A stretch of DNA of 63,814 nucleotides, filler included, from Olpidium bornovanus S191 (lineage: Eukaryota > Fungi > Olpidiomycota): the NCBI GenBank assembly GCA_017911155.1. It is 29 parts of 29 records of this genome, joined end to end, with 100 filler letters (N's around TTAATTAATTAA, not from the genome) between each part and the next. Parts side by side here need not be neighbours in the genome. Positions count along the whole stretch, not along the records: positions 24,620 to 26,000 come from JAEFCI010011030.1; 28 more parts are not named here. One strand, given 5' to 3'. The notes below the pieces were generated by a model. It was not told the DNA's origin and did no database searches. It saw only the letters and a list, made by a program, of their open reading frames with translations. Positions 24,702 through 26,000 of the stretch are shown in pieces; the stretch's first letter is position 1, and each line of letters starts with the position of its first letter. The position numbers were made by a program, and so were the translations under genes.

Positions 24702-26000
24702 TCAGGGATGGGCCAGGGACGGGGAATGGGCGGCGCGAACGGGATTCTCCGCCGGACGCTCGGGGGTGTACCTGAACAGCGGGTCGCCGCCGCCCTCGTA
24801 CGCCGACGAATCGTACGGCCGGATCGCCGCCCCCTCCCTCCTGCTTAATATGTGCTGCGGCAAGTGGACCGCCTGAAGCGCCGTGCGGAGGTCGTCGACG
24901 GGTTCGGCCGGAACCGCGGCAGCCTCGGCCGTCCCGCCGAAGGCGAGGTCAAACTCCCTCGCGGTCATGTGCGGACAGCTCCGCGGAGCGCGGTGCCGTC
25001 GCCCAGGGTCCGTGTCGTCCGCGCAGCCGTGCGCGCGCGCGCCCGAGGGGACCTCCGGCCCGCCGGCGAGCGCCGTGGTGGGCCCGGAGTCGGGGTCTTC
25101 GTCCACGGCGTCGACTTTCCAGACGGAGAGCAGCGGCAGGAGGAGGGAGAACAGCGGGATCCCAAGGACGGTGTGCAGCAGCTCGTAGAGGACGTACATC
25201 GGCCGCGCGCGCGCCAGCTGGTAGGCGAGGTGCAGCGAGAACGCGGCGACGGCGCTCAGGGCCACCACGAACTTCGGGAGCGTTCGCGCGGCGACCGTCG
25301 GAACGCTCGGGTAGAACAGGTCCAGGACCAAGAGGTAGCAGTACACCGCGGTGCCCGGGCCCAGCGCCCGGCAGAAGAGCGCGACGATCGCCGCTGCGCG
25401 GACTCCTAACGGCCCGGCCGCGCCGCCGCTTCGCCCGCCGTTCCCGACGCCACCGCGGCCTGCGAACGCCAAGTCGAACAACCGGTGCCAGTCGACGGCG
25501 AACCGCCGCGCCGCGGTGCGGACCATGCCGCCGAGAGTGGTCGGTAGTCCCACGTAACCGGCGGCTGCCGGCTCGAAAGCGATCTTTGACCCTGGGTTGT
25601 GCCGCAATATGGCCGCGCCCGCTTTCGCGTCCTCGCCGATTCTGAGAAGCGCGCGCGCTTGCGGCGTGCCGCCGGAATCCGGTTCCCCCCGCAGCTCTCG
25701 CAGAACTCCCTCAGAGGCGACGCAGGGCCGGCCGTCGCCGTGCCGCAGCTTGTACGCGACGAGGGACGGGTTCAGAGACGCGGCGACGCTGCCGGTGACG
25801 GCCATCTCCAGGCACGGCCTGAAGACGTTCATGATCAGGTGTTCGTATGCCTGCAGTGCCGCGAGAAACGAGGTGCCGGCTCGTGACGGATGAGTGCCGC
25901 CGCCGACCGCCGCGATGTTCGGGGACGACGCGAGACGGACTGCCATCCGGTCCAGGCAGCTGGATTCGACGAGGATGCCGGCGTCCACAACGAAGAGATA
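24702..26000 (-). CDS. Division-2 chitin synthase-like C-terminal region with degenerate catalytic motifs, 5'-truncated
   Basis: YLFVVDAGI..LQAYEHLI..CLEMAVTGSV..LLRIGEDA..ILRHNP..RTAARRF..LFDL..TM helices..LGIPLFSLLLPLLSVWKVD is collinear with CHS class IV/V/VII. Confidence 0.8.
   Translation of the reverse strand, partial: YLFVVDAGILVESSCLDRMAVRLASSPNIAAVGGGTHPSRAGTSFLAALQAYEHLIMNVFRPCLEMAVTGSVAASLNPSLVAYKLRHGDGRPCVASEGVLRELRGEPDSGGTPQARALLRIGEDAKAGAAILRHNPGSKIAFEPAAAGYVGLPTTLGGMVRTAARRFAVDWHRLFDLAFAGRGGVGNGGRSGGAAGPLGVRAAAIVALFCRALGPGTAVYCYLLVLDLFYPSVPTVAARTLPKFVVALSAVAAFSLHLAYQLARARPMYVLYELLHTVLGIPLFSLLLPLLSVWKVDAVDEDPDSGPTTALAGGPEVPSGARAHGCADDTDPGRRHRAPRSCPHMTAREFDLAFGGTAEAAAVPAEPVDDLRTALQAVHLPQHILSRREGAAIRPYDSSAYEGGGDPLFRYTPERPAENPVRAAHSPSLAHP

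Follow-up and report, generated by a model that had tools for sequence, protein, structure and literature searches.

A chitin synthase-like gene of Olpidium bornovanus with altered catalytic motifs, and its relatives

What becomes of a chitin synthase (CHS) homolog in which several of the motifs described as essential for chitin synthesis have changed while its reading frame has stayed open? The question is raised by a locus of Olpidium bornovanus S191 (Fungi; Olpidiomycota; GenBank assembly GCA_017911155.1). The window, i.e., the whole stretch of DNA that was analysed (63,814 nucleotides, filler included), joins 29 parts of 29 records of this genome, and the locus lies in the segment at positions 24620-26000 (JAEFCI010011030.1), which is 1.38 kb long and about 70% G+C. 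A preliminary description, made from the sequence alone, had named the gene a chitin synthase-like probable pseudoenzyme. Homology searches and motif comparison mark the encoded protein, called the query below, as a new, very divergent member of an already noted, uncharacterised clade of CHS-like proteins.

The coding frame, its fold and its motifs

On the minus strand, a reading frame runs uninterrupted from position 26000, the segment edge, to a TGA stop codon at 24702-24704, and specifies 432 amino acids. These are the last 432 codons (24705-26000, minus strand) of a CHS-like gene of glycosyltransferase family 2 (GT2), as indicated by the open frame, a match to the Pfam family PF03142, a G+C content of 0.857 at third codon positions (GC3) and HMMER matches to fungal CHS-like proteins. 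As the frame runs off the edge at 26000, the segment lacks the 5' part of the gene; the donor-binding motifs 1 to 3 (M1-M3) and any Cyt-b5 domain would lie 5' of this edge on the same strand and are cut off. The open frame reported in the preliminary description stands with a different length, since the 428 codons given there were counted from an internal GTG, whereas the frame reaches the edge. Only 10 of 20,000 base shuffles keep an equally open frame (p about 5e-4). The G+C contents at codon positions 1, 2 and 3 are 0.72, 0.55 and 0.86, respectively, a split in which the C-terminal tail does not differ from the catalytic part, and the remaining five reading frames of the segment contain 2-7 stops each. 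The open frame, the codon-position bias and the stops in the five other frames together identify the minus-strand frame of 432 codons as a real coding frame.

The single Pfam match of the query is PF03142 (Chitin_synth_2; E 6.1e-12, 45.4 bits against a gathering cut-off of 27), in which residues 2-298 correspond collinearly to positions 205-486 of the 527-position profile. This and the alignment to canonical division-2 enzymes bear out the collinearity with division-2 CHS that had been proposed. Neighbours of the query in a protein language model are chitin synthase clusters (top score 0.96). A search of the PDB with the single query sequence gave only a chance match to SynGAP, whereas a profile built from the query and its relatives matches the solved enzyme PsChs1 (7wjm, E 5e-25), CaChs2 and ScChs1, and also hyaluronan synthases; in NCBIfam, the query has only a sub-threshold match to PgaC.

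In the AlphaFold2 model of residues 1-345 (mean predicted local distance difference test score, pLDDT, 81.6; predicted template modelling score, pTM, 0.80), the GT-A domain is represented by its second half; interface helices are also seen, as are three long helices (residues 195-229, 241-263 and 267-294). The best Foldseek matches of this model are PsChs1, CaChs2, ScChs1 and Chlorella-virus hyaluronan synthase, all with a probability of 1.00 (7x06, 7stn, 8k3p and 9yq2). The three long helices, predicted from the alignment and the model to be membrane helices (25119-25418, minus strand), come after the interface helix and end in a conserved P...P...W..D pattern; the query retains the Pro, Trp and Asp conserved in the last helix, in agreement with the persistence of transmembrane helices and C-terminal pattern noted at the outset. 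The profile matches and the model place the query in the chitin synthase superfamily (GT2, PF03142) as a protein of division-2 type, in which the synthase fold and the membrane helices are predicted to be kept.

Motifs were compared by alignment with the closest relatives and with canonical division-2 enzymes carrying every motif, and motif names and roles follow a review (PMC12653383). Motif 4 (M4; VDADT) reads VDAGI (25974-25988, minus strand, as are all motifs below), in which the first Asp is kept and the second is replaced by Gly. The residues had been read correctly as a change of DADT to DAGI, but this change is not diagnostic of a loss of function because motif 4 is D-V-G-T in PsChs1, a division-1 enzyme of solved structure. 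Motif 5 (M5; QxxEY, canonically QVYEY, in interface helix 1) reads QAYEH (25839-25853), with Gln and Glu kept and Tyr replaced by His. At motif 6, the TCLPGCF gate lock, the query has AASLNPS (25764-25784), which contains the described change of TCLPG to ASLNP and places Asn, the consensus residue of the remodelled clade discussed below, at the Pro position. Motif 7 (M7; GEDR) is GEDA at 25626-25637, exactly as first described; only the Arg is lost, and the donor-binding Glu123 and the general-base Asp124 are kept.

Motif 8 (M8; QRRRW) reads TAARR (residues 162-166; 25503-25517): Gln and Trp are lost, the third Arg, a ligand of the donor diphosphate, persists, and an Arg stands in the Trp column. 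The register is fixed without gaps by H-R-L-F-D-L (25470-25487), which equals the canonical H-N-L-F-E-L six residues downstream, and Phe167 (25500-25502) aligns with the Ile after the canonical Trp. The earlier reading, AARRF (25500-25514), gives the sequence present there one residue off the aligned register; Gln and Trp are lost in either register. Motif 9 (M9; SWG, CON2) is absent, with Asp-Pro at the Trp-Gly columns. At the places where a competent processive chitin synthase has its motifs, the query thus reads QAYEH, GEDAK and TAARR, with SLNPS at the gate lock and no SWG. The visible half of the protein keeps D6, Q50, E53, E123, D124 and R165.

Relatives of the query and the remodelled clade

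An exhaustive HMMER search of 1.84 billion representative proteins gave 123 matches at E <= 1e-3, 113 of which cover the region and entered the tree. The best match has 82 bits and 33% identity, and no ortholog closer than this was found in the databases searched. No relatives were found in a scan of metagenome contigs; a word-index protein search with the 432-residue fragment gave no match, which is uninformative as full-length relatives exceed its length window. QxxEY, QxRRW and EDR at the place of motif 7 are absent from all 15 best matches, and fully canonical synthases start at rank 16. Over the whole set, 31 of the 113 matches lack these three motifs and are called remodelled here, and the other 82 are canonical. 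Relatives with the same kind of substitutions, for which the preliminary description had proposed to look, were therefore found, at 33% identity at best.

The remodelled members come from Mucoromycota, including Mucorales (Mucor, Lichtheimia, Hesseltinella and Chlamydoabsidia), Umbelopsis and Endogonales (Jimgerdemannia); from Entomophthora, Conidiobolus, Basidiobolus and Ramicandelaber; from the chytrids Spizellomyces, Fimicolochytrium, Phlyctochytrium and Quaeritorhiza; from Paraphysoderma (Blastocladiomycota); and from the aphelid Amoeboaphelidium. In summary, the clade extends over Mucoromycota, Zoopagomycota, chytrids, Blastocladiomycota and one aphelid. The eight relatives whose domains were scanned have a weak Cyt-b5 match followed by CS2 and often by DEK_C (4/8), a domain order that points to the division-2 type with no myosin motor.

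In maximum-likelihood trees, the branch separating canonical from remodelled proteins has a support of 99 in the Shimodaira-Hasegawa-like approximate likelihood-ratio test (SH-aLRT) with 114 rows, and of 100/99 with 51 rows and a careful search. The query is placed on the non-canonical side of this branch, as sister to a chytrid subgroup with modest support (84/69). As its branch is long and its composition skewed, evidence independent of the tree was sought. About 25 residues after the last helix, a clade-specific R-x-H-G is present in 27 of the 31 remodelled proteins and in none of the 82 canonical ones (R, H and G are conserved to 93%, 97% and 97% in the clade), and motif counting and clade conservation identify it in the query as R-A-H-G (residues 322-325; 25026-25037, minus strand). 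In addition, of 47 residues that reach at least 75% conservation in the clade, 34 are kept in the query, against 22 to 47 in accepted members, and so are 10 of the 14 that are conserved in the clade but different from canonical enzymes.

The query and the QxxRW-less proteins further have in common the PF03142 core of division-2 type, the loss of the QxxRW Trp, the gate-lock Pro and the SWG Gly, a Cys after a conserved Pro, and F-E-P-x-A-x-x-Y-x-x-L-P-T before motif 8, the last of which is found in both the query and its best match. With the canonical division-2 synthases (classes IV, V and VII) the query shares the collinear alignment to PF03142 positions 205-486, the fold and the helix pattern after the interface, but it differs from them in the CON1 motifs and SWG, and lies on the other side of the 100/99 branch. 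These features mark the query as a true, very divergent member of the remodelled CHS-like clade.

Conservation within the clade was determined for 29 remodelled and 35 canonical proteins, with the relatives extended upstream. In the remodelled proteins, the donor motifs are kept: the M1 Glu in 93%, the M2 DG in 97%, the residues of M3 (R-G-K-R-D-S) in 93-100% and both Asp of M4 (D-A-D) in 93% each. The M7 Glu is present in 100%, the next, general-base position is always acidic (15 Asp and 14 Glu), and the third, diphosphate-binding Arg of M8 is kept in 76%. By contrast, residues of the acceptor site and the gate are largely gone: the M8 Trp and the gate-lock Pro (replaced by Asn in 16) are at 0%, as is the QxxEY Glu (Pro in 19/29), the EDR Arg is at 24% and the SWG Gly at 3%. 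The Q and W of QxxRW, the gate-lock Pro, the EDR Arg and SWG are 100% conserved in the 35 canonical relatives.

This contrast indicates that the clade has undergone selective remodelling, in which acceptor and channel-gate motifs were rebuilt around a nearly intact donor pocket, rather than erosion. The conservation of M1-M4, the M7 Glu, the acidic residue that follows it and the third Arg of M8 suggests that donor binding may be retained, possibly with a changed activity; the pattern as a whole argues that the clade still binds uridine diphosphate N-acetylglucosamine (UDP-GlcNAc) without canonical extension and translocation of a chitin chain. The residues kept in the visible half of the query agree with this pattern. 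The range of taxa, from an aphelid to Mucorales, implies very long persistence of the remodelled state, and tree and motifs together point to an old, division-2-derived clade whose motif loss is inherited and maintained, not the result of recent decay. The proposal that the motif changes of the query do not reflect decay is upheld by the open frame, the codon bias, the confidently predicted fold and the remodelling common to a wide and old clade. The label of pseudoenzyme is not supported in the form given, in view of donor motifs M1-M4 at 93-100%, an invariant M7 Glu and a third Arg at 76% in the clade.

Several further observations concern the relatives. The residue after M3 is Gln in every canonical enzyme and never Gln in the remodelled clade, where Met prevails (59%). 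Mucoromycota members (Mucorales and the Endogonales pair P0001/P0003) have a low-complexity insertion of roughly 30-80 residues between the gate lock and the conserved Pro-Cys (alignment rows P0001, P0003, P0005, P0010 and P0012), which is absent from the chytrid members and the query. The nearest relative of the query by tree path, P0002, has as its only source a public read-set assembly without annotation (Logan contig L001, 2785-5931), and the small open reading frames (ORFs) neighbouring it on that contig have no Pfam matches.

Proteins of this kind have been encountered before and set aside. Goncalves et al. 2016 (PMC5122149) mention a class VIII of Mucoromycotina proteins without QXXRW/QRRRW, proposed by Melida et al. 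2015, as 'not retained'; going by the description in PMC5122149, the remodelled clade is probably this class. The changes are thus no private novelty of the O. bornovanus gene, as the remodelled proteins had already been proposed as 'class VIII' and dropped from classifications. Likewise, 22 extra CHS-like models in fungal genomes were excluded by Pacheco-Arjona and Ramirez-Prado (PMC4141765), and matches without the motifs were discarded as false positives by Liu et al. (PMC5353729). The discarding of CON1-less sequences in large CHS surveys (PMC4141765, PMC5353729, PMC5122149) explains why this old clade, with members among aphelids, chytrids, Blastocladiomycota, Zoopagomycota and Mucoromycota, is still uncharacterised. 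Another protein with a CS2 domain lacking the CON1 motifs is ORY39038 of Rhizoclosmatium globosum, in which this domain is fused to GH16; GH16 is present in 0/8 of the scanned relatives of the query.

Possible roles of the query and its clade

In the explanation that we favour, the gene, of which the 3' 1.3 kb is seen, would be intact and selectively maintained, and would encode a very divergent member of an old CHS-like GT2 clade. In this clade, the synthase fold would have been preserved, along with the UDP-GlcNAc pocket in those members known over their full length, and the elements that grip the acceptor end and control the channel would have been rebuilt, i.e., the QxxRW Trp, the gate-lock Pro, SWG and the QxxEY Glu-Tyr, the Glu of which is retained in the query. 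The membrane protein would still bind a sugar nucleotide but not polymerise it, and would serve the machinery that builds the cell wall as a partner with a regulatory or scaffolding function. The two parts of this explanation differ in strength: from its motifs, the query is quite probably not a processive chitin synthase, whereas its role as a substrate-binding, non-polymerising partner, regulator or scaffold of wall synthesis is put forward tentatively, at somewhat less than an even chance. The latter part draws on an analogy with Schizosaccharomyces pombe Chs2 (division 1, class II), which is catalytically inactive yet affects contractile-ring constriction and septation (PMC10184318; PMC5122149 supplement). 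As an inactive CHS homolog with a cellular role, it provides a precedent for a non-enzymatic paralog; it belongs to the other division and lost its activity independently, so that the analogy is one of role, not of kinship.

Conversely, the clade might consist of enzymes with a changed activity, which would use UDP-GlcNAc or another UDP-sugar for non-processive transfer to a lipid, a protein or another glycan, or would hydrolyse the donor. The donor pocket is so nearly perfect (M1-M4 kept at 93-100%, M7 Glu invariant, the next residue acidic, the diphosphate-binding Arg at 76%) that this possibility is very much alive, and the query itself keeps D6, Q50, E53, E123, D124 and R165, which a pure scaffold would not need. 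On the other side, the acceptor-stacking aromatic is missing at the Trp position, and the catalytic-base position alternates between Asp and Glu (15:14), whereas in yeast Chs2 activity was lost or nearly lost upon most conservative substitutions within the three CON1 motifs (Nagahashi et al., via PMC4141765). It is this alternation, together with the precedent of fission-yeast Chs2, that makes us lean towards a non-polymerising partner, and we regard a changed enzyme as rather unlikely, although a serious candidate. A processive synthase that tolerates unusual motifs would account for the fold, the membrane helices, the M7 Glu-Asp and the third Arg of M8, all of which are kept, and Phe167 adjoins the position of the lost Trp; yet the Q and W of QxxRW, the gate-lock Pro, the EDR Arg and SWG have all changed, at positions that are 100% conserved in the 35 canonical relatives and described as essential (PMC4141765, PMC12653383), which makes this very improbable.

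The many substitutions in catalytic motifs, the very long branch, the low-complexity Ala/Pro/Arg/Gly tail and the lack of a close ortholog would be expected of a decaying or recently inactivated chitin synthase pseudogene. Such a pseudogene would hardly have kept 432 codons open (as do 10 of 20,000 shuffles), a GC3 of 0.86 against 0.55 at second positions that is uniform and includes the tail, clade-specific residues such as R-x-H-G, and a fold predicted with confidence, so that decay is improbable. Sequencing or assembly errors might likewise be suspected in a contig segment of only 1.38 kb with a long homopolymer at one end, but dozens of coherent in-frame substitutions match the clade consensus, among them Asn in place of the gate Pro, a Cys following Pro, and R-x-H-G, and errors of this kind are barely credible.

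Several points weigh against the partner role and against the placement on which it depends. The query has a long terminal branch (2.7-3.6 changes per site) and a skewed composition, so that long-branch attraction could inflate its placement in the tree. No ortholog above 33% identity was found in the databases searched. The query also departs from the clade consensus: Glu53 of QxxEY is kept at M5 (Pro in the clade, a trait that is not universal there), Gly replaces the second Asp of DAD at M4, the conserved Trp at the SWG position (M9) is missing, DEK_C is absent, and a Gly-rich insertion is private to it. Donor binding by the query would be an extrapolation from its relatives, as M1-M3 lie beyond the segment edge. 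Moreover, the strongly conserved donor pocket and acidic pair are equally compatible with a binder devoid of catalysis and with an enzyme of changed activity. Finally, no functional study of QxxRW-less CHS-like proteins, and no experimental study of any member of the clade, was found in the literature searched.

For the clade as a whole, one may speculate, with the odds rather against it, that these proteins, the query included, are not dead: the chitin-synthase fold, with its donor pocket and acidic pair hardly altered, could have been repurposed over hundreds of millions of years to bind UDP-GlcNAc for a different, non-processive reaction or for the sensing of nucleotide sugar to control wall synthesis. 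If this is true, surveys have filtered out, as 'false positives', an activity or a level of regulation not yet described for the fungal cell wall. What is newly added here is the selective pattern, a kept donor pocket with rebuilt acceptor and gate parts, which turns 'dubious sequences' into a testable hypothesis of a substrate-binding, non-polymerising paralog. As chitin synthases are antifungal targets and Mucorales have many copies, the identification of non-polymerising paralogs matters for gene counts and for the effects of inhibitors. The locus alone is a modest gain, as it adds a further member, of unusual divergence, from a genome with very high GC content, and the importance of the analysis rests mainly on the clade-wide pattern rather than on the single locus.

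Other features of the segment

The alignment reveals a Gly-rich insertion of about 12-16 residues (25413-25460, minus strand), located after the interface helix and before the first membrane helix that follows, with pLDDT below 50 at residues 185-192. Its sequence is G-G-V-G-N-G-G-R-S-G-G-A-A-G, and none of the aligned relatives has it. An in-frame intron was considered as its source and rejected, as there is no plausible GT...AG interval of fungal intron size and GC3 is high over the whole frame. The C-terminal tail of about 130 residues (24705-25103, minus strand) is rich in Ala, Pro, Arg and Gly and, from model and composition, predicted to be disordered; it contains no DEK_C, in contrast to many relatives, as comparison with the DEK_C alignment by hhalign gave a probability of 0.1 and Pfam gave no match at E <= 1.

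RNA families and tRNA were searched for on both strands of the segment, and none was found. An ORF of 185 codons on the plus strand (24852-25409), antisense to the CHS-like gene, was dismissed as a chance artefact of the 70% GC content; its frame has 5-7 stops across the segment. The other long ORFs of the plus strand are likewise expected of an antisense strand with this composition. About 33 bases past the stop codon of the CHS-like gene, a run of 36 A residues (24633-24668) is preceded by A8-TGACC-A. This run is poly-T on the coding strand, and therefore is not the poly(A) tail of the gene; it may represent a true homopolymer in the genome, or else a contig-end artefact.

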